Virus record (IMG/VR): IMGVR_UViG_3300033388_007730
Coordinates: 62,001 to 126,000 of that record
DNA: 64,000 nucleotides
Strand: one strand, 5' to 3'
Shown here: positions 686 to 62,498 of the stretch, one piece after another
Layout: every line of letters begins with the position of its first letter
Position numbering within the stretch: position 1 is the stretch's first letter
Made by a program: the position numbers and the translations under genes
The notes under the pieces: model-generated
Database searches by the model: none
Told to the model about the DNA's origin: nothing
What the model saw: the letters and a program-made list of their open reading frames with translations, nothing else

Positions 686-900
686 TGGAGTACAAATGTA
701 CGACAGTTCCTATTAATAAACTTATTTCTACGCCATCTGGCTTTGTAATGCCAATGTGTCAAGAATGTAAAACAATTGATTGTGATAATCCAATAGAGTC
801 TAAGAATATTAGTGTACTAGGCGTTAATAAAAATATAAAAGTGTTCGTAAGAGGAACCCAAATTTCTTTTGTTGTTAATTGTAATGGATACACAAAATGA
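685..900 (+). CDS. small Cys-containing hypothetical protein
   Basis: overlaps previous stop (TAATG); CQECKTIDC motif. Confidence 0.55.
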   Translation: MEYKCTTVPINKLISTPSGFVMPMCQECKTIDCDNPIESKNISVLGVNKNIKVFVRGTQISFVVNCNGYTK

Positions 901-1703
901 GTGCAAGAATTAGTAAAGCTAGACAAACAAGTAGAATTGGAAAGCAAAGAGAAAAAAAACAAGATGAATTCTCTAAGCATCAAAAAAGTATGGCTAAAAT
1001 TAAAGCGAGTCCTAATACTCAAAAGATAAGTTATCCCATATATAAGGAGGCTTATGAATATGTGGATAATTTGTTTCCAGGTTCTGAAGTAAAGAAAGTT
1101 GGTATCTATAAAGTGAGTCCTACTTATCTCACTAAATTGGGATATGGTGGTTGCGGTGGTTTTTATTGTAGGTACTCGAAGGTGATTGTAATTTCATCCT
1201 GGTTTCCAGTGGATAAAAGAAGATATCCATCTAGATATAATTTTAGTATCAAAGCTAAAATAACTAAAGATGAAGTGATAGCACATGAATTGCTTCATTA
1301 TTGTTTTGTAGAAGAGGGTGGCAATTCTAATAGTAGAGAAATAAATGAAGAGTTTGCTTATGGTTGGTCAATTGGATATTTAAGATTTAAAGGACATTCA
1401 GACGATTTTATTATAACAAAGAATTTTTATCCATTCTTGGTAGAGATTATGTCTAAACAGGCTTTAGATTATGTTTTACATTTGGATGGTAGTACCAGAG
1501 CTGAATATAATAAATTTTCTAAATTCAAGCAAAGGGAATTTTTTAGAAAATATGGAATAAAATGGCATAATAAAAGAAAAGAATTAGCATATGAATATGG
1601 GGAAGATCTCATTGAGTTATATGATAGAAAAGCATCAGAGGGAACTCACTGCACTAAAGAAGTTACAAAAACTGACCGATTTGATCTAATGGATCTAGAT
1701 TAG
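897..1703 (+). CDS. putative zincin-like metallopeptidase-domain protein with C-terminal tag
   Basis: VIAHELLHY (HExxH) with downstream EEFAY; ends TDRFDLMDLD. Confidence 0.55.
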   Translation: MSARISKARQTSRIGKQREKKQDEFSKHQKSMAKIKASPNTQKISYPIYKEAYEYVDNLFPGSEVKKVGIYKVSPTYLTKLGYGGCGGFYCRYSKVIVISSWFPVDKRRYPSRYNFSIKAKITKDEVIAHELLHYCFVEEGGNSNSREINEEFAYGWSIGYLRFKGHSDDFIITKNFYPFLVEIMSKQALDYVLHLDGSTRAEYNKFSKFKQREFFRKYGIKWHNKRKELAYEYGEDLIELYDRKASEGTHCTKEVTKTDRFDLMDLD

Positions 1704-1727: not shown

Positions 1728-2243
1728 ATGAGCTACGAACATAATTTTGATGAAAAAATTGTGGTATTTCCAGATGAAGAAAATTATCTAAAATGTAAAT
1801 TAGCATATTTAGAATATGAAAAGGGATTTGAAGAGAGTGAGACTCATTTTTCTTTTTTGGAATATATACAAGGTTCTTGGCAGAGTAATTTAATGGGTTG
1901 GGTGGTAGAAGAGATTAAAGATAATGATACAGCTTTTCAAACTTACACTTTTTCTGTAGATTGGTCAGATTCAGCAAATGATAGTTGGAGTAGCTCTTCA
2001 TACACAAATACTACTACAGAAAGTTCTCAATCTGTTGTTGGAGATGATGGAACTATTGTTGGATTTAATGGAGAAACTTTATATACTACTTTAGTACTAG
2101 GCTCTACCAACACTACAGATTTACATAATGGATGGATAAGAACAGATTCTACTCATCGTTATTCTACTGATACTCCAGAAGAACAAGAGAAAAAGAGAAA
2201 AAAGAATGAGTTTGATAGGTTTGATATTTTAGATTTTGATTAG
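1728..2243 (+). CDS. hypothetical protein with C-terminal tag
   Basis: SD GGAG; Ser/Thr-rich middle; ends FDRFDILDFD. Confidence 0.65.
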   Translation: MSYEHNFDEKIVVFPDEENYLKCKLAYLEYEKGFEESETHFSFLEYIQGSWQSNLMGWVVEEIKDNDTAFQTYTFSVDWSDSANDSWSSSSYTNTTTESSQSVVGDDGTIVGFNGETLYTTLVLGSTNTTDLHNGWIRTDSTHRYSTDTPEEQEKKRKKNEFDRFDILDFD

Positions 2244-3375: not shown

Positions 3376-3957
3376 ATGACAGAATGTTATTATATAGGAA
3401 GTAGAAAGTGCAGAGTTCGTACAATAACCCCTAAACAATTGGCAGAAGCAACAGAAGCAGGGATTACAAGAAGAGATTATCATCGTAGTGTCGGCTCTAC
3501 AGGACATTATTATGATCCGGAACAAGGAGAATATAAAAATGAAATATATGGATGTTTGGGAGAGATAGTATTTAGAGATATCGTAAAAAAAAATGGTCTT
3601 GGATCTGTTTCTCATTTTTATCCGTTTTATTCAATTGGCAGGGAAGAGATAGCAAAAAAGGCAAATCATGATGCGGAGATATGTTCAAAGACAATAGAAG
3701 TAAAAACAGTTATTCCTCCAAGCGGGCATAAAAAAAGAATATTAGTTAAATTAAGAGAGTATAAAAAAGGAATTAATTTTTATGTTGTTGTTAAATTTAT
3801 TAATGATAATGAATATGTCTTTGCTGGATTTTGTACTGATGAAGAGTTGAAAATAAATACACCACGTAGTTTTGGGCAGGGAGGAAAATGTTATTGGAGA
3901 TTGTTGGAAGATTTGCATCACATGAAAAAAGATTGGTGGGAATTTGAGGAGAAGTAA
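3376..3957 (+). CDS. putative PD-(D/E)XK restriction-endonuclease-fold protein
   Basis: GCLGE...HDAEI...IEVKT pattern. Confidence 0.45.
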   Translation: MTECYYIGSRKCRVRTITPKQLAEATEAGITRRDYHRSVGSTGHYYDPEQGEYKNEIYGCLGEIVFRDIVKKNGLGSVSHFYPFYSIGREEIAKKANHDAEICSKTIEVKTVIPPSGHKKRILVKLREYKKGINFYVVVKFINDNEYVFAGFCTDEELKINTPRSFGQGGKCYWRLLEDLHHMKKDWWEFEEK

Positions 3958-3958
3958 A

Positions 3959-4255
3959 ATGGAAGAACACAGTCCATATTTTAATTATATTACATGGAAA
4001 CAAATGGCAGAGATTTCAACTTCTGTGACAGAGAATGGTGTAGTAGATGACATGTTATTTGCATTAAAGTTGCTCTCTATAATATATTGTATCGAAGAAG
4101 ATATATTAAAGGATATGAAGATGAGTGACATTATGAGATTGAAAAATGCTGTTGAGAAAGGAACACCAGAGGATGTTAAAAGAGAGAAAAAATGGGTGAT
4201 AAGTTATATTAAAGATAAATATGAAGTTGATAGATTTGAGTTGATGGACTTGTAA
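3959..4255 (+). CDS. hypothetical protein with C-terminal tag
   Basis: SD GAGGAG before ATG 3959; ends VDRFELMDL. Confidence 0.6.
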   Translation: MEEHSPYFNYITWKQMAEISTSVTENGVVDDMLFALKLLSIIYCIEEDILKDMKMSDIMRLKNAVEKGTPEDVKREKKWVISYIKDKYEVDRFELMDL

Positions 4256-4317: not shown

Positions 4318-4500
4318 ATGGGTAAGCTAAAAGCTAAAGAGTTTCAGTATGAAGAATTATTTTCGGAAGTTAAAGAGATAAAAGAGAAAAACAAGGAAAA
4401 TGAATCTAAAATTGAAGAATTAGAAAAAAGCAATAAAGAGTTAGAAGAAAGCAATAAGAAGTTGAATAAATATACCAAATTTGAGGCGATGGACATTTGA
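4318..4500 (+). CDS. small coiled-coil protein with C-terminal tag
   Basis: heptad-like ELEKSNKELEESNK; ends YTKFEAMDI. Confidence 0.55.
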   Translation: MGKLKAKEFQYEELFSEVKEIKEKNKENESKIEELEKSNKELEESNKKLNKYTKFEAMDI

Positions 4501-4665: not shown

Positions 4666-6066
4666 ATGAAATTCAGTAATAAAGAGTTTGTGCATTGGCA
4701 TGTTCATAGCGAAAATTCGAAATTTGACGGATTGGCGAAATTAGATGAGTTAGTAATGAGAGCAAGAGAGATGGGGTTCCCAGCTCTTGCACTTACTGAC
4801 CATGGAAATATTCAGGGCTGGATTCAGTTCTTGAAATTAGCGAGAGCTACTAAAGATAAAAAAGGTAATGATATTCCTTATGCTCCTATTAAACCTATTC
4901 TTGGTTGCGAGTTTTATCTTTCCCGAAAAATGGATATAGGTCAATATGATGAAAAGATGAAGAAGAAGGGTGAGCCTGTAAGACAACAACCGGATAAGAG
5001 GAAAGGAAATAGACATTTAAATCTTTACGCAATGAACTTTAAGGGATATAAGAATATTTGCAGATTATCTCAAGCTTCATTCACAAGAGGATTTTACTCA
5101 GATCCAAGAATTGATATAACTACTTTAGCGGAGCATAGTGAAGGTGTTATGATAGGTTCTGCTTGCTTATCTAGTCTGATTAATGTTAATCTTATGTATG
5201 GAAGATACAATGAAGCTAAACAAGTTTGCACTACTTTAAAAGATATATTTGGAGAGAATTTTTTCCTAGAAATAATGTATCATGGAATTCCTGAAGAAAG
5301 AGAAATATTACCTTACATATTTCAACTATCAAAAGAATTAGAGATACCAGTAGTCGCTACTAATGATTCTCATTATATACATAAGGAACAAGGAAGATCA
5401 CAAGAGTTATTAATGTGCATGTCTCAGCAGAGGTGTATAAAAGATTCTAAAAGATTAAACTTTAGACATATGGAATTTTATTTGAAAAGTGCTGATGAGA
5501 TGTACAAATTATTTAAGGGTCATCCAGAAGCTCTTGTAAATTCAAGAGTATTGGCAGAGAGAATTAATACAAAAGATATTGAAGAGAATTTGTTTGGAGG
5601 TATGAGACTTCCTATTTTTGATATCCCATCAGAGCATAAAGATCCATTTGAGTATATGGAAAAATTAGCCTGGGAAGGAATGAAAAAGATTGGATGGGAT
5701 AAGAGTCAACCACACATAGACGCATTGAAAATGGAGATAAATGATGTGTTAGTGGCAAGAGATAATAATAATTATGATTTTGCTACATATTTCTTAATAG
5801 TAAAAGATTATATTGAGAATGCAAGAGATAATGGTGTGTTAGTAGGTTGCGGAAGAGGAAGTGGATATGCCAGTGTGTTGTTAAGGTGTCTTGGAATTAC
5901 TTATGGAGCTGATCCTTTAGAGTATGGACTTTTATGGGAAAGATTTTTAGGGTTCTCAGATTCTAGGTTCATTAAAGAAAATGATTTTGGCTTTGAAACG
6001 GATATAATTCAACAAACATTAGATATGGATGTTGGTGGTGATGTAGAGGAAGATTTTAATGGATGA
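4666..6066 (+). CDS. dnaE: DNA polymerase III alpha, piece 1 (PHP domain plus start of palm)
   Basis: HWHVHSENSKFDG, ALALTDHGN, GCEFY, VVATNDSHY, GCGRGSG, LGITYGADPLEYGLLWERFL. Confidence 0.9.
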   Translation: MKFSNKEFVHWHVHSENSKFDGLAKLDELVMRAREMGFPALALTDHGNIQGWIQFLKLARATKDKKGNDIPYAPIKPILGCEFYLSRKMDIGQYDEKMKKKGEPVRQQPDKRKGNRHLNLYAMNFKGYKNICRLSQASFTRGFYSDPRIDITTLAEHSEGVMIGSACLSSLINVNLMYGRYNEAKQVCTTLKDIFGENFFLEIMYHGIPEEREILPYIFQLSKELEIPVVATNDSHYIHKEQGRSQELLMCMSQQRCIKDSKRLNFRHMEFYLKSADEMYKLFKGHPEALVNSRVLAERINTKDIEENLFGGMRLPIFDIPSEHKDPFEYMEKLAWEGMKKIGWDKSQPHIDALKMEINDVLVARDNNNYDFATYFLIVKDYIENARDNGVLVGCGRGSGYASVLLRCLGITYGADPLEYGLLWERFLGFSDSRFIKENDFGFETDIIQQTLDMDVGGDVEEDFNG

Positions 6067-6244
6067 ACAGAAAGAATTACTATGTAGATTTTGGGAAAAG
6101 AAATTGGGTCTAGAGTATATGTAATATCTTAGAGATCGAAAAAATGATTACCTTATGAGTATTTTAGAAGAAGATTAGAATAAATTTGATATTATAGACA
6201 TAGATAAAGAAGAAGAAAAAGAAGATGATATATGTTCCACTTAG
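6059..6244 (+). pseudogene. small tagged ORF interrupted by two in-frame stops
   Basis: SD GAGGA, ATG 6059; TAA 6122 and TAG 6176 in frame; readthrough gives ...NKFDIIDIDKEEE. Confidence 0.4.
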
Positions 6245-6404
6245 TGATGAAGAAAAAGGACAATTAAAACAGTACTGGCTGACAATGCGTCCAAAAGAAT
6301 ATGTTGATGTTCTATTTGATGATCTTCCTGTCCCTCATTATTGTTGTGATTATATGGTAAATATTACAGAGACACAAAAAAGATTTGAGTTAATGGATAT
6401 ATGA
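6225..6404 (+). CDS. 59-aa hypothetical protein with C-terminal tag (absent from ORF track)
   Basis: hand translation MIYVPLSDEEKG...TETQKRFELMDI*. Confidence 0.65.
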   Translation: MIYVPLSDEEKGQLKQYWLTMRPKEYVDVLFDDLPVPHYCCDYMVNITETQKRFELMDI

Positions 6405-6422: not shown

Positions 6423-6662
6423 TTGATGATAGAGGTAATTTATTTTAAATATGATAATGGATACGAGGTCTGGAGAGATTTTGATGAGGAAAATAATTGT
6501 ATTCATTGGAAAGATTTTAGTGGAGTAGAACATTGGTGGGAGCATAGAGTAGAAACTTCAGTGATGTGTATAAAAATTACAAAAGAAGAATTTGAGGAAA
6601 TAGAAGCAAAGAAAAAAGGAAAGAAAAATATTTATACAAGATTTGAGATAATGGATATGTGA
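6423..6662 (+). CDS. short aromatic-repeat protein with C-terminal tag; true start probably 6401 with a frameshift near 6440
   Basis: repeat units YFKYDNGYEVWRDF / IHWKDFSGVEHWWEH; ends YTRFEIMDM; upstream frame MSIRIKKLDDRGNL fits the repeat. Confidence 0.55.
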   Translation: MMIEVIYFKYDNGYEVWRDFDEENNCIHWKDFSGVEHWWEHRVETSVMCIKITKEEFEEIEAKKKGKKNIYTRFEIMDM

Positions 6663-6673
6663 AAGAAGATTAA

Positions 6674-7723
6674 ATGCCTGATTTAGAAATAATTAGAAAA
6701 GAAATTATAGAGGAAATAAGCAATAGATTGAAAGGTGATCCTAGATTGCCAAAAGCTGTTTCTAAAGCAAATGAAGAGTTAGATGTTATGAGCAATACTA
6801 ACGGATTAGAACAGAAAAACAATTTAGAAACATTTTATTCTATATGGAAGAAGAATCAAGGGAAAGTTGGACATAAAAATGAGATAAACAGTTGGACAGC
6901 TTTCTTTTTAGGAATGACAGAAACTAAACCTGAAAAAGGTAGTGAGTTCGTTCCCATAAGAAGGTGTTTCGCAAGAGCTGGGTTCCCAGACATAGATACA
7001 GATTTTGATGATGAGAAGAGAGATAGTGTTTATGACTACATCATTGCAAAATATGGAAGAGAAAATGTTGGTAATATTGGTACTCATGGAAAGCTGAAAT
7101 TTAAGAGCTGTGTGACAAGAGTTGTTAAGGCATTAGATGTGGCAGGATCTTTCCTTAAAAGTCCAGAGGCTTATATTTCTGATAATGCTCAAAAGGTTAC
7201 AGAGATATTAGAGCCATTTCCTAAAAAGGGATTAATGAAAGTTACTGATGAAGATGGCAATGAGCATTTGATAAAGAATTTTAAAGATGCTTATAGATAT
7301 TGTCCTGATTTTGCTAAGTCTATAGACAAACATCCAGAGATAAAAATACACGCCGAACATATAGAAGGAACATTTGCAAATTTTGGTTGTTTAGCAGCTA
7401 ATACTCCGATTTTAACTGAAAAAGGTTGGATAAGAATAGATCAATTAACTACTAAATATAAAATAGCTTATGTTGATAAAGATGAAAAAATTAAATATAC
7501 TGATGAGTTCAAGAAGTTTAAAACAGGTATAAAAAAGACATACCGAATGAGATTATCTAGCGGTTCATTCATTGATGTGACAGATGAACATTTAATTTTT
7601 ACAGATAAGGGATGTGTTAAGTTTGAAGAAATTAGAAAAAATCAAAAAAAATATAAAATATATGAAGTTAAAGAATATATCAAAGAACGACGAGCCAAGC
7701 TTTGTGATATATTAGATAATTAA
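6674..7723 (+). CDS. dnaE: DNA polymerase III alpha, piece 2, fused to N-terminal half of a split intein
   Basis: FPDIDTDFDD catalytic motif, YIIAKYGRENV, IEGTFANFG then intein block A CLAANTPILT. Confidence 0.88.
   Translation: MPDLEIIRKEIIEEISNRLKGDPRLPKAVSKANEELDVMSNTNGLEQKNNLETFYSIWKKNQGKVGHKNEINSWTAFFLGMTETKPEKGSEFVPIRRCFARAGFPDIDTDFDDEKRDSVYDYIIAKYGRENVGNIGTHGKLKFKSCVTRVVKALDVAGSFLKSPEAYISDNAQKVTEILEPFPKKGLMKVTDEDGNEHLIKNFKDAYRYCPDFAKSIDKHPEIKIHAEHIEGTFANFGCLAANTPILTEKGWIRIDQLTTKYKIAYVDKDEKIKYTDEFKKFKTGIKKTYRMRLSSGSFIDVTDEHLIFTDKGCVKFEEIRKNQKKYKIYEVKEYIKERRAKLCDILDN
7388..7723 (+). mobile_element. split intein N-fragment (IntN, 111 aa)
   Basis: starts Cys CLAANTPILTEKG; block B IDVTDEHLIFT; stop follows with no endonuclease. 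Confidence 0.85.
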
Positions 7724-7751
7724 TTACCTAATCATAAGGTTATGGAGGGAA

Positions 7752-7895
7752 ATGATGAATAATTGTGAGTTATTTGAAATAGTATCAATAGAAGAATTAG
7801 ATTTTGAAGATGTTTATGATATCTCTATGAATGAGGGTCCAGAATTTTTTCAAAATGAGCATAATTATGTGGCTAGCAATATAGTTGTTCATAAT
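7752..7895 (+). mobile_element. split intein C-fragment (IntC, about 48 aa)
   Basis: block F VYDISM...HNYVASNI and block G VVHN followed by +1 Cys. Confidence 0.85.
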
Positions 7896-9152
7896 TGTCA
7901 CGCTGCTGGAGTTGTGGTATCGGATGTCCCACTTGATGAGATTGCTCCGTTGAGAACAGCAAGGAAAGGTATGTTAGCAACTCAGTTCCCTAATGAAGAT
8001 TTAGAGACTTTGGGTTTGATAAAATTTGATATATTAGCTATCGCTACTTTGTCTGTTATAAAAAATACTGTGGAAATGATTAGAAAGAATTATGATATAA
8101 CAATAGATATAGAGAATTTACCGTTAGATGATCAAATGACTTTTGAGATGTATAGAACCGGAAATCTTGGAGGTGTCTTCCAATGTGAGAATTGGGGTAT
8201 GCAAAGGACAATGAGAGATATTAAGGTTGACAGTTTTGGAGATATAGTTGCTGGTTTAGCATTATACAGACCTGGACCTATGGATTCTATCCCTAAATAT
8301 TGTGCTAGAAAAAATGGAGAAGAGGACGTTAGTTATTTTCATCCTTCAATTGAACCTCACGTTAAGAAGTATCTTGAAAAAACTTATGGAATTTTATGTT
8401 ATCAAGAACAGGTTATGCAGATTTGTAATTCATTAGCTGGATTTACTATTACTGATGGTTATATTATGATTAAAGCTATTGGTAAGAAAAAAGATTATTT
8501 GATGAATAAATTTAAAGAACAATTCATAGGTGGATGTGTTAAGAATGGTGTAGATGAGTATGTCGCTATAGAATACTGGACTAAATTTATAACTCCATTT
8601 GCAAGTTATGGGTTTAATTTGGCGCACAGTGCTTGTTACGGTTATAATTCTTATACTACTGCTTATTTAAAAGCACATTATCCTGAAGAGTTTATGTGTT
8701 CATTCTTAAATGTTATAACTCATGGATCTGGAGATAAATATGATAAGATAGAAGCATTTGAGAGAGAATTTAAGAGGAAAATGAATGTTAAGTTTCTTCC
8801 AAGAGATATTAATCGGTCGAAGGTGGAGTATATCGTTGAAAAGCCTGGAGATAGATGCGGAGTAACAAAGATAGAGATGAGACCTAGTTTAATATGCAAA
8901 GGAGTTGGATTTAAAGCTGCTGAGGACATAGAGCAAAATCAACCATTCAAAGATTTGGAAGAGTTTGTTGAGAAGATAAATACTTCTACTGTAGATACTA
9001 GAGTTATTGAAGCATTGGCAATAGGCGGATATTGGGGCAAGAAATATGTCAAGGATCCACTTAGTTTAGTCAAAAAGTTCACTATGATACGCGATGATAG
9101 AAAAAAATCTTTTCAAAAAGGATATGAACCAGGAGCAGATATTTTTGGATAA
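7752..9152 (+). CDS. dnaE: split intein C-fragment fused to DNA polymerase III alpha piece 3
   Basis: own SD GGAGG at 7744; ...NIVVHN|CHAAGVVVSD, KFDIL, GVFQCE, ALYRPGPMD, FASYGFNLAHSACY, YLKAHYP; no OB-fold or tau-binding tail. Confidence 0.9.
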   Translation: MMNNCELFEIVSIEELDFEDVYDISMNEGPEFFQNEHNYVASNIVVHNCHAAGVVVSDVPLDEIAPLRTARKGMLATQFPNEDLETLGLIKFDILAIATLSVIKNTVEMIRKNYDITIDIENLPLDDQMTFEMYRTGNLGGVFQCENWGMQRTMRDIKVDSFGDIVAGLALYRPGPMDSIPKYCARKNGEEDVSYFHPSIEPHVKKYLEKTYGILCYQEQVMQICNSLAGFTITDGYIMIKAIGKKKDYLMNKFKEQFIGGCVKNGVDEYVAIEYWTKFITPFASYGFNLAHSACYGYNSYTTAYLKAHYPEEFMCSFLNVITHGSGDKYDKIEAFEREFKRKMNVKFLPRDINRSKVEYIVEKPGDRCGVTKIEMRPSLICKGVGFKAAEDIEQNQPFKDLEEFVEKINTSTVDTRVIEALAIGGYWGKKYVKDPLSLVKKFTMIRDDRKKSFQKGYEPGADIFG

Positions 9153-9212: not shown

Positions 9213-9386
9213 GTGATTGATGTAAGATGCCCCCAGTGTAATAGCAATGATTTGGAGATCATTGATACCCAAGGTCATATCAAAGATGCCTATATTTCAG
9301 AGAAAACTGGATGTTTGAAATGTGGTCATGTATTTGATGTAGAAGCAAAAATATTTTATAAAAAAATAGGAGAAAAAAATGGCTAA
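9213..9386 (+). CDS. 57-aa zinc-ribbon protein (absent from ORF track)
   Basis: GTG start after SD GGAG; CPQCNSNDLEIIDT...CLKCGHVF. Confidence 0.6.
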   Translation: MIDVRCPQCNSNDLEIIDTQGHIKDAYISEKTGCLKCGHVFDVEAKIFYKKIGEKNG

Positions 9387-9663
9387 ATCTATTGTGAAAA
9401 AGACTATTAGAAGAAAAATCCAAACTGCAAAATTCGAGGCTCTTGATATTGAATTAGAAGTGGAAGAGCAGATTATATGGGATACAGAAGAAGAAAGAAT
9501 AGCGGCTACTGCTAAACTTTCTAAGAGATTGTTGGATGATTTTACTAAGACCTACAATGAAGTAGTCGAGAGAACTGGTGTTGATAGATGTATTGGTGTT
9601 GTTACTGTTAAGAAAGACAACAATAAATCTAATGGATCTGAAGTTGATTTTGATTTTAGTTAA
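9379..9663 (+). CDS. hypothetical protein
   Basis: SD AGGAG; acidic-aromatic end EVDFDFS. Confidence 0.65.
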   Translation: MAKSIVKKTIRRKIQTAKFEALDIELEVEEQIIWDTEEERIAATAKLSKRLLDDFTKTYNEVVERTGVDRCIGVVTVKKDNNKSNGSEVDFDFS

Positions 9664-9674
9664 GAGAGTGAAAT

Positions 9675-10733
9675 ATGACAGATAGAAGTGATGCTTTAGT
9701 AGCTTTTGAAGAAATGTTCAATGGCGTGTCTGAGGGTAGAGGTAAAGACAACACTGATCAGGCAGAAGAGTATGGTGATAGTTCTTTATCGGAAGAATCA
9801 TTTAACGATGTAGCAAAAAAAGTTGTTAATGATTTAAATGAGTGTGAGAGTGGGCATTCTTTGACAGATGTGAATAAGGTTCTTGGAGATATGGAGGAAG
9901 AAGAAATTCTTAAAGAAGCTCCTAGAGTAGAAATTGTAGAAGTTGTAAAAGATGATTCTGATGATGATTTTGATGCTTTGCCAGAGGAACCTAAAGATCT
10001 TCCAGAGCCTAGTGCAAGATTTGAGGAGATTGTAGAAAAGGCTACAAAAGAATTGGCTGAAGTAACAGAAGTTGTAGAGCATAAGGGTGGTTGTGTCGTT
10101 ATTTCGAATGAAAAAATTAAATGGAATTTAGATAGTCCGACAGCTCTATATAATAATTTTTACAGGAAGAAAAAAGAGTTGGTAGAAATTTATACTGGTA
10201 AACAACTTGATTTTTATGCTCTTAATATAGAACTTCGCAATGCATCAGTAGATATATCTTATGTTGTTTTTGATCAGGAAGTAGTTCTTCAACAGATGCA
10301 GGAAATTCAACAGCATAGAGAAAGAATAAAGAACATATCTTTAGAATGTAATATTCAGTATTTTGTGTGGAAAAGATGGATAGAAAAAGATATGATGAAG
10401 GGTTATCTTGCTATGGTAGAATATATTAAACCAGCTATTAAACAAGAAGGACTCGTTTTAGAACATATGAGAGATTTAGAATATTATTATGCACAGTTAG
10501 AAGCTCTTCATAATAATTGTCAAAAAGTAGAGAAGACTTTAGAAGCAGCATATGATACTTTGAGTAGAAGAGTTTCTATTTGTATGGAACTAAAAACTGG
10601 TATCAGGTATGCCAGGAGCGATAGTAGAGAAACTCCTTCAAAACAAGAGATTGTGAGAGAAGATGATTTTGATGATGTTCCAATGGGAGAAACTGCTACA
10701 AAAAAGAAAAGTGGTTTTATTGGATGGGCTTAA
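9675..10733 (+). CDS. hypothetical protein, acidic N-terminus plus helical/coiled-coil domain
   Basis: 352-aa ORF in the replication module immediately before SSB. Confidence 0.6.
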   Translation: MTDRSDALVAFEEMFNGVSEGRGKDNTDQAEEYGDSSLSEESFNDVAKKVVNDLNECESGHSLTDVNKVLGDMEEEEILKEAPRVEIVEVVKDDSDDDFDALPEEPKDLPEPSARFEEIVEKATKELAEVTEVVEHKGGCVVISNEKIKWNLDSPTALYNNFYRKKKELVEIYTGKQLDFYALNIELRNASVDISYVVFDQEVVLQQMQEIQQHRERIKNISLECNIQYFVWKRWIEKDMMKGYLAMVEYIKPAIKQEGLVLEHMRDLEYYYAQLEALHNNCQKVEKTLEAAYDTLSRRVSICMELKTGIRYARSDSRETPSKQEIVREDDFDDVPMGETATKKKSGFIGWA

Positions 10734-10742
10734 AATATTATG

Positions 10743-10771
10743 TTGAAAAGTGATTGTTAAAATTGTATAAT
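10743..10771 (+). promoter_or_regulatory. sigma70-like promoter for SSB-recA operon
   Basis: TTGAAA-17 nt-TATAAT. Confidence 0.65.
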
Positions 10772-10819
10772 TATATGAAGTAAAAATTTTTATTAACCCA
10801 CTTTTATAGGAGAAATATC

Positions 10820-11497
10820 ATGAGTGGATTTGTACAGTGGAATGAAGTACCAAGTGGTGGAGAAAGAACGAATTTTTTGGCTTTGAAGAGTGGTAATACT
10901 TATAAAATAAGACCTCTTCTTCAACCCCTTAATTTTCACAAGTATTTCCACAAAGTAGATGGCAAAATGAGAACTGCTGTCGTGTCGGAAGAAGTAGTAG
11001 CTCAAATGGCAGCTAAATATCCTGACTTAGGCAAACCAGCTAATCGTTATGCTATGTATGTTTTAGATAGAAATGACAATAACCAAATTAAAGTTATGGA
11101 ATTTCCTATCTCTGTTTACAAGCAATTTAGTAATAGTTTCCAGGCGACTAATAATGAGCCAGGAAGCAAGGTGAATGGTAGCGACTGGATGATTAAGATT
11201 TCAGGAACTGGTTTCAATACTACTTATGAAACAACATTTATCGCCAACACTCCTTTGACGGAAGAAGAAATTAATGTTGTGAAAACTGAGCTTGCTGGAG
11301 ACTCAGAAAAGTTAGCAACAATATTCCCTTTTAATGAGGTTCCTCAGGCGGAGAAAAGATTGTTTAATCCAGATGAGAAGGGTAATGGTGGTCAGGCTAG
11401 TTCGCCTGCTGTTAGTGCGCCTGCTGTTAGTTCGCCTGCTGTTAGCGGGATTGTTCCTTCAACTGGTTCAGATGAGGATTTTAATCCAGATTGGTAA
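10820..11497 (+). CDS. phage gp32-like single-stranded DNA-binding protein
   Basis: FLALKSGNTYKIRPL, YVLDRND..IKVMEF, DWMIKISGTGFNTTY; flexible linker and acidic tail DEDFNPDW; adjacent to recA. Confidence 0.7.
   Translation: MSGFVQWNEVPSGGERTNFLALKSGNTYKIRPLLQPLNFHKYFHKVDGKMRTAVVSEEVVAQMAAKYPDLGKPANRYAMYVLDRNDNNQIKVMEFPISVYKQFSNSFQATNNEPGSKVNGSDWMIKISGTGFNTTYETTFIANTPLTEEEINVVKTELAGDSEKLATIFPFNEVPQAEKRLFNPDEKGNGGQASSPAVSAPAVSSPAVSGIVPSTGSDEDFNPDW
11401..11445 (+). repeat. 15-bp tandem repeat x3 in the SSB linker
   Basis: (T/G)CGCCTGCTGTTAG units encoding SPAVS/APAVS. Confidence 0.75.
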
Positions 11498-11509
11498 TAG
11501 GAGATTGAT

Positions 11510-12712
11510 ATGGCTAAGTCTAAAAAAAGTAGTGACGACAAGGGCAAGGGCAAGAAAAAGAAAAGATCAGATATCGAAGTAGCTTTTGATAATTTGAAAG
11601 GTTTTTGTCAAATAGGGGCTAGAGTTTCAAGCCCTGGTAATGTTCCAACTGGTCATTTTAAGTTAGATTTTGCAATTCAATATGGAATGGATATCACTAA
11701 AACTGATTTGAGCAAAGTTGAAAAGAATGGGAACCAATACGATCCAAGTAAAACTCTTGGCATACCTCTTGGTAAGTTAGTCGAAATATACGGTGAAGAG
11801 GGAAGCGGGAAATCTTCCCTCGCCTACCGTATAATCGGTTATGCTCAAAAGTTAGGATATTTGACAGCTTGGATTGATGCAGAGCATTCTTATCAGGAAA
11901 ATTTAGCGAAACTGAATGGATGCGATACTAATAATTTGCTTTATGCTAATATGGTTAATCATGAAGATGCGGAAAAGGTTTTTTACGCAGAAGATATCAT
12001 GGATAAAATGATCATAATGATGAAGAACAAAGTAAAAGTAATAGTATTAGATTCAGTAGCAGCTATGGTTCCTGAGACTTTATATGAAGCAAAATCCAAG
12101 CAGCAGTTTATGGGTTTATTGCCAAGATTCTTAAGCAATAATTTGGGTAAACTTGTAGCTCATGCCGAACAGAATGGCACTCTTCTAATTTTTATTAATC
12201 AGCTTAGAGAAAAGATTGGTCAAATGTATGGAGATCCTAAAACTAGTCCTGGTGGGCACTGTCTACATCACAATGCGTCTCTTAGATTGCGCATGATGAA
12301 GAAAAATAGTAAAGATGCGGAACTTATTGTCCCGAATCCTGATACAGGAGAGGATATGTTGATAGGAAAGCATTCTATTGTTAGATTAATTAAGAATAGA
12401 TTTGCTCAACCTTATACCGAGTCTCTAGATATTCCTATTTATTATCAATCCTATTTTCCGGATATAGAAGAAATAGCTTTTGACACCGGAAGACAGATTA
12501 AATTGATTTCAGTTAGAAAAGGTATTTTTAATTGGGATGGATTAAAGATAGAAGGAAGAGCAGAGTTTATAGATCATGTTAAGAGTAAGGATTTGATTGA
12601 TGATCTTATTGAAGCGATTAAACTCAAGGCAGAGGAAAATAATGTTCTGCTTCCACCAGAAATTATTCAGTATTCTGGTATTAGTAGCGAGTGCTCCACG
12701 CAGGCGGAATAA
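11510..12712 (+). CDS. recA: RecA recombinase
   Basis: Walker A GEEGSGKS, WIDAEHS, Walker B VIVLDSVAAM, FINQLREKIGQMYGDPKTSPGG. Confidence 0.92.
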   Translation: MAKSKKSSDDKGKGKKKKRSDIEVAFDNLKGFCQIGARVSSPGNVPTGHFKLDFAIQYGMDITKTDLSKVEKNGNQYDPSKTLGIPLGKLVEIYGEEGSGKSSLAYRIIGYAQKLGYLTAWIDAEHSYQENLAKLNGCDTNNLLYANMVNHEDAEKVFYAEDIMDKMIIMMKNKVKVIVLDSVAAMVPETLYEAKSKQQFMGLLPRFLSNNLGKLVAHAEQNGTLLIFINQLREKIGQMYGDPKTSPGGHCLHHNASLRLRMMKKNSKDAELIVPNPDTGEDMLIGKHSIVRLIKNRFAQPYTESLDIPIYYQSYFPDIEEIAFDTGRQIKLISVRKGIFNWDGLKIEGRAEFIDHVKSKDLIDDLIEAIKLKAEENNVLLPPEIIQYSGISSECSTQAE

Positions 12713-12714
12713 GG

Positions 12715-13425
12715 ATGTATTATGAAAAATGGGTCGATAGGTTTCCTGAATCAGAAAGAAAATCTATAGTCAAAGCAGCCAAAATAACAATTGATAAACC
12801 AGAGGGTGCTAAAGCTTTAGATTATTTGATTAATACCAGGAAATTATCGAAGAAGATTATAGACGATTTTGATGTAGGATATTGTCCTAAATCTGTTAAT
12901 CATCAAGTTTGTGGCAGAATAATTACGCCTTTATATGATGCTTATAAAAATTTGGTAATTATATCTACCCGTCTTCCATATGCAGCTCCTCTTCGATTCT
13001 GGCATGAGCAGTTTGATAAAGGTTCTTACTTATATGGTCTTCATCGTGCCAAGAAATCAATAATCAAGAGTAACAAGGTTATTCTAGTTGAAGGAGAATT
13101 TGATGTGCTTGCGATGCATACTAATGGGTTCACTCAAACAGTTGGAATCTGTGGTAGTGCTTTAACTTTATTCCAAGTAGCATTATTATCAAAATATGCC
13201 TCTTTCTTTTATCTTTTATTTGATGGTGATGGACCTGGACAGAATGCAATAAATAGAGCTATGAAAATGTACAAGGAACATTTTTTAAGAGGTTATGGCA
13301 TATATTTTATTCCTGTTAGGGTTCCTAACCAGTTAGATCCAGATGATTTTATAAAACAAAATGGTAGAGTAGAAATGAAAAAAATATTAGTTGATGCATA
13401 TGAAGAGTATAAAATATTAATTTAA
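12715..13425 (+). CDS. dnaG: DnaG-type primase catalytic core (TOPRIM), no zinc-binding domain
   Basis: LYGL, VILVEGEFDVLAM, GSALT, LFDGDGPG, DPDDFI. Confidence 0.82.
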   Translation: MYYEKWVDRFPESERKSIVKAAKITIDKPEGAKALDYLINTRKLSKKIIDDFDVGYCPKSVNHQVCGRIITPLYDAYKNLVIISTRLPYAAPLRFWHEQFDKGSYLYGLHRAKKSIIKSNKVILVEGEFDVLAMHTNGFTQTVGICGSALTLFQVALLSKYASFFYLLFDGDGPGQNAINRAMKMYKEHFLRGYGIYFIPVRVPNQLDPDDFIKQNGRVEMKKILVDAYEEYKILI

Positions 13426-22749: not shown

Positions 22750-23020
22750 GACTAGTGTAATAAATATTAGATCTGATAAGTGTAGAGAAAATTTTGTTTA
22801 CATTGGAAGAGGAAGTAAATGGGGGAATCCTTTCTTTATTGGTAAGGATGGAACTAGGGAAGAAGTAATAGAGAAGTACAGAGACTGGATAAAAACTCAA
22901 CCAGAACTTCTCAATTCTCTACATGAGTTAAAAAATAAGAGGTTGGGATGCTATTGTTATCCCATGCACTGCCACGGTGATGTGTTGATAGAGCTATTAG
23001 AGGAAGAAGATAATGGCTAG
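22727..23020 (+). CDS. DUF4326 family protein
   Basis: VYIGRGSKWGNPF...LGCYCYPMHCHGDVL. Confidence 0.85.
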   Translation: MIVEVDIKTSVINIRSDKCRENFVYIGRGSKWGNPFFIGKDGTREEVIEKYRDWIKTQPELLNSLHELKNKRLGCYCYPMHCHGDVLIELLEEEDNG

Positions 23021-23420
23021 TTTATATGATTATATCCCAAAATACCCTATGTCAATATCTTTTGGAGGGAAAGAGATAAATGTTAGTGGCATTCAAAAAT
23101 TTGAAATAGAAGTGGATAGATGTTTTGCTCACTACTTCGTTTGGGTTGATACTGTTCAAATAGCTCCTCTATTACCATCTGGGAAGAAAAGCACTGTAGT
23201 TTTAACTCCAACCGAGTTAAGTTATGGTAGTCTTTTTAATATATCCAATATAACTTTAGTATGTAAAATTCTGAGTTTAGCATATCAGTCTAGGAGACAT
23301 AGATATATAGTTGAATTAAAATGCATCTTAAATCCAAAATTTTTAACCAAGTTTAAATACATAGAACCAGGAAAAGAAAAAAAAGAAGAAATAGATAAAT
23401 TTGATTTGATGGACTTATGA
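23013..23420 (+). CDS. hypothetical protein with C-terminal tag
   Basis: ends KEKKEEIDKFDLMDL. Confidence 0.6.
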   Translation: MASLYDYIPKYPMSISFGGKEINVSGIQKFEIEVDRCFAHYFVWVDTVQIAPLLPSGKKSTVVLTPTELSYGSLFNISNITLVCKILSLAYQSRRHRYIVELKCILNPKFLTKFKYIEPGKEKKEEIDKFDLMDL

Positions 23421-61943: not shown

Positions 61944-62498
61944 ATGTTAAAAATAGACATGTATCTTAAAAGATATGGTTTGAAAATTGAAGAAATTAAA
62001 AAAGTAGATTTAACAAAAGTCTATTACCAATATAGACCTGGTGTCGATTATGATAGAATTCTTACTAACTCTCCTCACTTTGAATTAGCTCAACATTACT
62101 ATAATAAGGGATTGAAATGGTTGAATGCAAATTTTAAAAATACAAAATATTTTATATTTCAAAAAGATATACTAAAAATCACTCCCTACGTTCCTGTGAA
62201 GAAAATGAGGTTGTTTGACTCTTTAAAAAAGGGTTATTTAGGGAAGGGATATGAGAATGACCGTATAGTTATTTTAAATGATCCATTTATTTGTACTAGA
62301 TATGCATTAAATTTGTCACTGCCTTCTCCAGAGGTTTTTATGGGGCATCATAGAGCAGGAGCGATGTTGGCTTTAGGGCAAAAAAATGTAGAAGTTATTG
62401 TGGCTGTTGACGATATGATAGGAACTAAGAATTGTTATGGTAGACTCCATGATATTTATAGTTTGGAGAAGGTTCAAAAAATGAGGTATAACTTATGA
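61944..62498 (+). CDS. ParB/Srx-like protein
   Basis: LFDSLKKGY...EVFMGHHRAGAMLALG..VEV. Confidence 0.55.
   Translation: MLKIDMYLKRYGLKIEEIKKVDLTKVYYQYRPGVDYDRILTNSPHFELAQHYYNKGLKWLNANFKNTKYFIFQKDILKITPYVPVKKMRLFDSLKKGYLGKGYENDRIVILNDPFICTRYALNLSLPSPEVFMGHHRAGAMLALGQKNVEVIVAVDDMIGTKNCYGRLHDIYSLEKVQKMRYNL

Follow-up and report, generated by a model that had tools for sequence, protein, structure and literature searches.

Protein ligation relies heavily on natural split inteins, and fast pairs that are mutually orthogonal are in demand. The DnaE split intein of cyanobacteria inserts at AEY/CFNK (PMC3759424; here and below a slash marks an insertion point). Three metagenomic DnaE loci with split inteins at non-cyanobacterial integration points (GOS DnaE-1, -2 and -3) were described by Dassa et al. 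2009 (PMC2677866), where the GOS DnaE-2 locus is reported to carry a Vsr-like endonuclease. The same report gives N-positive/C-negative interacting strands for gp41-1 and gp41-8 and one locus, gp41-7, without an endonuclease. It also proposes a stepwise route in which a contiguous intein is invaded by an endonuclease, the gene becomes fractured and the endonuclease is then lost (PMC2677866). For bacterial Pol III alpha, Novikova et al. 2016 list multiple points at which inteins insert.

The locus analyzed here lies in a stretch of 64,000 nucleotides (positions 62,001 to 126,000; hereafter, the window) of IMGVR_UViG_3300033388_007730, a viral contig of 219,188 bp. The G+C content of the window is 31%, and the phage carrying the contig is a large phage. 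A DnaE-type (Pol III alpha) polymerase is encoded in the window by three ORFs, all on the plus strand (4666-6066, 6674-7723, and 7752-9152). The initial annotation had read 7388-7895 as a naturally split DnaE intein at a non-cyanobacterial site. Both the site and the enzyme type stand, whereas the host gene is a phage DnaE-like polymerase in three ORFs and not a cellular dnaE. We consider it very probable that 7388-7895 encodes the two halves of a split class-1 mini-intein that splice this polymerase in trans, and that the locus is an endonuclease-free end state of the fractured-gene arrangement. Its parts are:

4666 to 6066, plus strand: piece 1 of the DnaE-like polymerase (PHP domain and start of the palm), an ORF of its own without an intein
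6674 to 7387, plus strand: N-extein, piece 2 of the polymerase (palm), matching Pfam DNA_pol3_alpha profile positions 6-213
7388 to 7723, plus strand: IntN, 111 residues and a TAA stop, with Cys1 at 7388-7390, within the 349-aa ORF 6674-7723
7724 to 7751, plus strand: spacer of 28 nt with a GGAGGG ribosome-binding site at 7744-7749
7752 to 7895, plus strand: IntC, 48 residues from ATG 7752 or 47 from ATG 7755, in a different frame from IntN
7896 to 9152, plus strand: C-extein, piece 3 of the polymerase, with Cys+1 at 7896-7898 followed by HAAG

Piece 1 gives a Pfam PHP match of 2.8e-40 and covers positions 1-97 of the DNA_pol3_alpha profile. The N-extein is collinear with an intein-less orthologue called L026 (89% nucleotide identity), carries the catalytic PDIDTDF motif at 6986, and ends in FANFG, its Gly being residue -1. 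The C-extein runs through LIKFDIL at 8016, a finger domain, SYGFNLAH at 8604, and an HhH domain, with Pfam matches to DNA_pol3_alpha positions 212-260, DNA_pol3_finger (6e-52), and HHH_6. The intein interrupts the DNA_pol3_alpha profile (PF07733) exactly at positions 212/213. From known Pol III alpha structures we take PDIDTDF to hold the catalytic Asp-x-Asp and LIKFDIL the third catalytic Asp. The intein site falls between these two elements of the palm, and thus a complete active site on one chain needs ligation.

The junction within ORF 6674-7723 reads EGTFANFG/CLAANTPILT. The ORFs bore out an IntN of 111 residues from the Cys at 7388 to a TAA ending at 7723, and an IntC that starts 28 nt later in another frame with its own GGAGG site (ATG 7752; GGAGGG 7744-7749). 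As read from the assembly, the TAA stop at 7721-7723 is followed by 28 nt to ATG 7752 or by 31 nt to ATG 7755. The latter is the more likely start of IntC, since its position 5 nt after GGAGGG gives the better spacing and it is also the start of the recorded 465-aa gene call. No terminator, Rfam family at threshold, or endonuclease remnant was found in the 28-nt spacer. The insertion point NFG/CHAAG was likewise as annotated, with SYGFNLAH uninterrupted from 8604 onward.

IntN has a conserved core of about its first 92 residues, to YKIY (7663), with block B (TDEH) at 7580-7591 and a long basic strand at 7508-7555 (net charge +7). Its last 19 residues form a lineage-specific tail of net charge 0 that is unlike the tail of any relative. 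IntC has a long acidic strand at 7770-7829 (net charge -7), the block F Asp at 7818-7820 (VYDIS), and the terminal His-Asn, of which the Asn is 7893-7895; the junction reads VVHN/C and continues into CHAAG. The hand counts of charged residues in the initial annotation were exact: IntN contains 26 basic residues (20 K and 6 R) against 18 acidic ones (9 D and 9 E), giving a net charge of +8 and a pI of 9.3, and IntC contains 11 acidic residues (3 D and 8 E) and no K or R, giving a net charge of -11 and a pI of 4.05.

The decisive test of intein identity is comparison with the empty site of L026 (P0069, on a 386-kb contig), whose polymerase is a single 656-aa ORF with 88% BLASTP identity to the IntC-bearing ORF. 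Upon excision of 7388-7895 the joined exteins are 1971 nt long, exactly the length of the intein-less L026 gene, to which they are 89% identical in nucleotides and 93% in amino acids, and L026 reads FANFGCHAAG at the junction. A protein search gave about 90 further relatives in which a site of the FANFGxHAAG type is empty, and the site is uninterrupted in most of the relatives recovered. The two halves match complementary parts of the Pfam Intein_splicing profile (positions 11-90 for IntN and 120-155 of 155 for IntC), although the matches of the single halves are weak and each is below the gathering threshold. The best PDB sequence match of IntN is the Spl DnaX mini-intein (7CFV; E 7e-9, residues 3-87), and IntC weakly matches the gp41-1 (E 0.62), DnaB, and DnaX inteins. 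Cys1, the block B T-x-x-H, the block F Asp, the terminal His-Asn, and Cys+1 are all present, and the block B Thr and His are invariant even in an alignment with distant inteins. By every feature tested the window intein is a class-1 split intein, and splicing activity is predicted.

The split is conserved in the family. A search with the IntN-bearing ORF gave 27 ORFs that terminate in a homologous IntN with the end point within a few residues (40-67% overall identity), and a search with the IntC-bearing ORF gave 18 that begin with a homologous IntC; these relatives come from independent ENA, JGI, NCBI, and Logan assemblies. As expected of split inteins, the halves are separate translation units, each fused to an extein, with the break in the loop between blocks B and F and with complementary charge. 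Across the family the net charge of IntN ranges from 0 to +19 (mean +7.9) and that of IntC from -5 to -13 (mean -9.2). The basic-N/acidic-C polarity is a property of the whole family, and the annotated reversal relative to Npu/Ssp DnaE holds both in the window and family-wide. Two short contigs (1-2 kb) carry odd fusions: in P0066 the first ~95 residues of a piece-2-like protein are joined to a DNA methylase fragment, and in P0067 an unrelated N-terminal region is joined to the last ~75 residues of a window-type IntN. These may be assembly chimeras or real rearrangements.

Conservation of the splicing residues also bears on the best of the other explanations, namely that the halves are splicing-dead remnants of a mobile element that hold the polymerase fragments together non-covalently. 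There is precedent for fragmentation of this sort in phage Aeh1, where NrdA fragments were split by a homing endonuclease (PMC3045599). Moreover, the same polymerase tolerates an intein-less split between pieces 1 and 2, making non-covalent assembly workable, and the IntN tail of the window is atypical. However, neither the window nor any of the 27 IntN and 18 IntC relatives has lost a residue needed for splicing (Cys1, the block B Thr and His of TDEH, the block F Asp, the terminal HN, and Cys/Ser+1), and a docking module alone would not be expected to retain these. Position +1 tells against dead remnants as well, for in intein-less relatives it is C, S, A, F, Y, I, Q, V, G, or T whereas in intein-bearing ones it is only C or S. 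We regard dead remnants as improbable and an active split intein as the better reading.

Unbroken versions of the same intein occur at the same site in P0134 and P0071 (both 162 aa) and in P0186 and L029. Window IntN is 50% identical to residues 1-98 of the P0134 intein (P0134:237-398) and window IntC is 80% identical to residues 123-162. The contiguous P0134 intein, rather than the window halves, was modeled with AlphaFold using an alignment (A2) with 16 other contiguous inteins. The model has a mean pLDDT of 88.6 and a pTM of 0.83, and its only disordered stretch is residues 103-116. The window break maps to residues 99-122, which contain this sole low-confidence loop, and on the model the break falls at the endonuclease-insertion loop between blocks B and F. 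A MAFFT alignment (A1) of the separate halves with the contiguous intein was discarded because IntN was misaligned onto the C-half, an artifact that we attribute to the internal pseudo-symmetry of the HINT fold. The top 40 Foldseek matches of the model in the PDB are all inteins. Those at the top are class-1 mini-inteins with target-normalized TM-scores of about 0.7-0.86 at 15-25% identity, and the matches include Ssp/Npu DnaB, Npu/Ssp DnaE, NrdJ-1, DnaX, RecA, and gp41-1. In an exhaustive profile-free search of the contiguous intein against 1.84 billion representatives, all 8 clusters at E <= 1e-10 were of the same DnaE allele, which marks the allele as a distinct lineage. There were 63 clusters at E <= 1e-3, and those inspected were distant inteins at other junctions, two of which appear from their flanking residues to be of DnaB and ThyX type.

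Given these unbroken versions, the window locus might itself be a contiguous mini-intein whose stop and frame change arose by error in sequencing or assembly, or through a frameshift that recently made it a pseudogene; the region is A-rich, and both the stop and the frame rest on the assembly. Several observations make this very unlikely. The frame downstream of the A-runs still matches that of relatives (IRKNxxKYKIY), and an identical IntN-bearing protein has been recorded from more than one contig. To fuse the halves, an indel would have to fall within the 7 nt at 7714-7720, and the resulting linker would be hydrophobic. The start of IntC is homologous to the starts of 17 other IntC genes and has GGAGGG 5 nt upstream. 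Joining of the two ORFs by programmed ribosomal frameshifting or read-through, to give a cis-splicing intein, would suit halves only 28 nt apart on the same strand, but we give it hardly any credence because no candidate slippery site or stimulatory structure was seen at the locus, Rfam gave nothing at threshold, and eight relatives with 0.4-1.4 kb and other genes between the halves argue that the family works in trans.

These eight are the other split loci with enough flanking sequence (L004/L032, L016, L018/L031, L019, L020, L022, L023, and L033), and in six of them (L004, L016, L018, L019, L022, and L033) a conserved ORF of 284-308 residues lies between the halves. This ORF, of which L019 2736-3590 is an example, carries a C2H2-type zinc finger in its N-terminal part and is weakly DUF559-like in its C-terminal region, where a profile of the six sequences also gave a weak match (E 0.06) to the I-Bth0305I catalytic domain (3R3P). 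In many cases it overlaps the stop of IntN or the start of IntC, and in some a small ORF comes after it. In L023 a different ORF, of 449 residues, lies between the halves. In L020, which represents a degraded endonuclease stage, IntN is fused to a 90-aa extension and a 111-aa ORF is also present. The layout of these relatives is the fractured-gene arrangement of Dassa et al. 2009 (PMC2677866), in which a free-standing endonuclease gene lies between the halves. The window has no such gene and is the only locus among those examined with nothing between the halves, and tblastn found no remnant of the endonuclease or of the small ORF anywhere in the window. The tail of window IntN was considered as what an in-frame deletion might have left of the C-terminus of the endonuclease, but this was rejected because the local alignment was matched by 412 of 1000 shuffles.

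On a tree of C-exteins the 15 split alleles are interspersed with intein-less alleles, and well-supported branches force at least 12 changes of intein presence (15 rows). Such a distribution is as expected of a mobile element or of repeated loss. Differences from the intein-less sister L026 are in excess around the site (~7313-7387 and 7896-8000) and are mostly synonymous: 29 of 180 positions (16%) differ in the site flanks versus 98 of 1260 (7.8%), with p = 6e-4 for an interval picked post hoc. The dip could be a homing co-conversion tract or could reflect evolution of an endonuclease site. The sampled intein-bearing loci are not closer in this low-identity stretch.

The phage DnaE family is an intein hot spot. 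Many relatives whose FANFGxHAAG site is empty have another, different split intein, which is inserted after SYGFN[KR]/ at a point four residues further downstream than the cyanobacterial junction (P0030-P0033, P0040-P0048, P0128, P0130, P0140, and P0169; the window equivalent is 8604-8627), and in P0128 this second intein is contiguous. In P0052 and P0064 the second intein follows GFNRAH/ and GFNAAH/, respectively. The ORFs of P0130, P0140, and P0169 start with the IntC of the first intein and end with the IntN of the second, and thus the polymerase is in four pieces there. Inteins with LAGLIDADG domains occur as well. In L004 (5992-8613) piece 3 has a contiguous one at the junctions YGVLC/ and /CYQEQ (Pfam Intein_splicing, LAGLIDADG_3, and Hom_end), and in L018 (12-2621) a LAGLIDADG-bearing intein lies in the PHP-domain piece.

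The empty-site allele, the conserved split, the contiguous homologues, and the HINT model together support the original proposal of a naturally split and probably trans-splicing intein. The two adjacent co-oriented genes would probably be co-transcribed, with the second translated from its own ribosome-binding site. The basic IntN (strand +7) would then capture the acidic IntC (strand -7) electrostatically, and the associated halves would fold into a HINT domain. Judging from the intact catalytic residues, the fold, and the behavior of characterized split inteins, splicing should begin with an N-S acyl shift at Cys1, continue with trans-thioesterification to Cys+1, and end with cyclisation of the Asn in the terminal His-Asn. 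The predicted product is one 656-residue polypeptide reading FANFGCHAAG, which would associate with the separately encoded PHP-domain piece 1. As to its history, we infer a mobile fractured-gene element that has lost its endonuclease gene, the window being the endonuclease-free end state.

The break between piece 1 (4666-6066) and piece 2 (6674-7387) is a second break in the polymerase, without an intein, and ORFs 6225-6404 and 6423-6662 lie within it. Pieces 1 and 2 are separate in every close relative examined, with zero to about seven small ORFs between them, and they presumably assemble non-covalently. A segment of ~80 residues of the unsplit DnaE is present in both pieces: residues ~382-501 of L005 align with residues 372-453 of piece 1 and also with residues 35-152 of piece 2, where the copy is degenerate. 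A two-gene DnaE is also annotated in Microbacterium phages. Downstream of piece 3 lies a replication module (9213-13425) with synteny kept across relatives:

within 9213 to 13425, in conserved order: a 57-aa zinc-ribbon ORF, an ORF of ~94 residues, and an acidic ORF of ~350-400 residues
10820 to 11497: candidate gp32-like single-strand-binding protein
11510 to 12712: RecA-like ATPase
12691 to 13425: Toprim primase

Seven plus-strand ORFs in the window end in a shared C-terminal tail, [RK]F[DE]x[LM]D[ILMF] (for example RFELMDI), which is found in 0 of 233 minus-strand ORFs:

897 to 1703, plus strand: ORF with the tail motif
1728 to 2243, plus strand: ORF with the tail motif
3944 to 4255, plus strand: ORF with the tail motif
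4318 to 4500, plus strand: ORF with the tail motif
6225 to 6404, plus strand: ORF with the tail motif
6423 to 6662, plus strand: ORF with the tail motif
23013 to 23420, plus strand: ORF with the tail motif

Relatives have runs of small genes ending in RFEILDI/L, with the final residue either I or L (L002 2845-5364 and L033 1924-3037). The codons of the tail vary synonymously, and thus the constraint looks to be at the protein level. The tail may resemble the clamp-binding peptides, acidic and hydrophobic, at the C-termini of T4-type phage proteins. Two of the tail-motif ORFs had no PHROG match.

Searches for the locus elsewhere gave little. No close DNA-level match was found in GenBank phages. 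When 185,579 species genomes were scanned for HN/CHAAGVV, a narrow junction pattern that excludes Ser or Thr at +1 and other extein variants, there was one match, a chance hit on a high-GC archaeal contig without a polymerase at that position. A scan of IMG/VR with a version of the junction having an AGY Ser codon gave 30 matches, all to one unrelated 22-codon stretch and mostly from one sample. Thirty viral contigs of 20-40 kb (L034-L063; mostly sample 3300045988) share this near-identical stretch, which reads SVLLRYRLVHNSHAAG in one frame; it is an open segment with no relation to inteins, and its match to the junction pattern is due to chance.

Among known systems, the GOS DnaE loci are alike in having a phage-like DnaE-type host, a non-cyanobacterial site, and a break in the endonuclease-insertion loop, and FANFG/CHAAG may be one of their three integration points. 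The relatives of the window share with the GOS fractured genes a free-standing endonuclease gene of the Vsr-like type between the halves, often overlapping the IntC start, whereas the window has only 28 nt there. The phage helicase inteins gp41-1 and gp41-8 are also split, belong to class 1, and derive from phages, and on their interacting strands the N-half is positive and the C-half negative. The gp41-1 structure (6QAZ) matches the contiguous homologue with a target-normalized TM-score of about 0.84 at ~25% identity, but its host protein is another one and it is shorter, 128 residues when fused. The Spl DnaX mini-intein (7CFV) is contiguous and cyanobacterial and resides in a clamp-loader subunit.

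The Ssp and Npu DnaE inteins occur in an enzyme of the same type, use class-1 chemistry, and are broken in that same loop (TM-score 0.70-0.80), but the window intein departs from the cyanobacterial allele in site, polarity, and sequence similarity. The equivalent of the cyanobacterial site in the window, ASYGFNLAH, is intact at 8604, 236 residues downstream of the window intein site. The cyanobacterial N-half is negative and the C-half positive, the reverse of the window pair, and the cyanobacterial halves are encoded at distant loci whereas those of the window are adjacent. The contiguous homologue is 15-21% identical to the Npu/Ssp DnaE intein structures. Its 19-25% identity to the Npu DnaE and gp41-1 structures makes orthogonality to existing tools plausible.

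The basic-N/acidic-C family, with its many natural variants and both Cys and Ser at +1, is a pool of candidates for such tools. Empty sites, contiguous mini-inteins, split inteins with an endonuclease, a degraded endonuclease, and endonuclease-free adjacent halves all occur at one site, and thereby the family documents the stepwise route, put forward in 2009, by which a contiguous intein becomes a fixed split one. It also presents a phage replicase that would depend on post-translational assembly from three pieces, or four in some relatives. A wider reading, which we offer tentatively and rate somewhat short of an even chance, is that the FANFG/C/S-HAAG allele (C or S at +1) of jumbo-phage DnaE preserves every stage in the birth of a split intein at one site, that the window pair is fixed, compact, and active and shows orthogonality to Npu DnaE and perhaps also to gp41-1, and that the replicase comprises up to four polypeptides, with two split inteins in relatives.

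The site and the polarity had been presented as unusual, but both have precedent in the loci described by Dassa et al. 2009 (PMC2677866), and neither a non-cyanobacterial site, nor reversed polarity, nor a locus lacking an endonuclease is new in kind. We class the window locus as a new member, one without an endonuclease, of the fractured-gene type of phage split intein first described in 2009.
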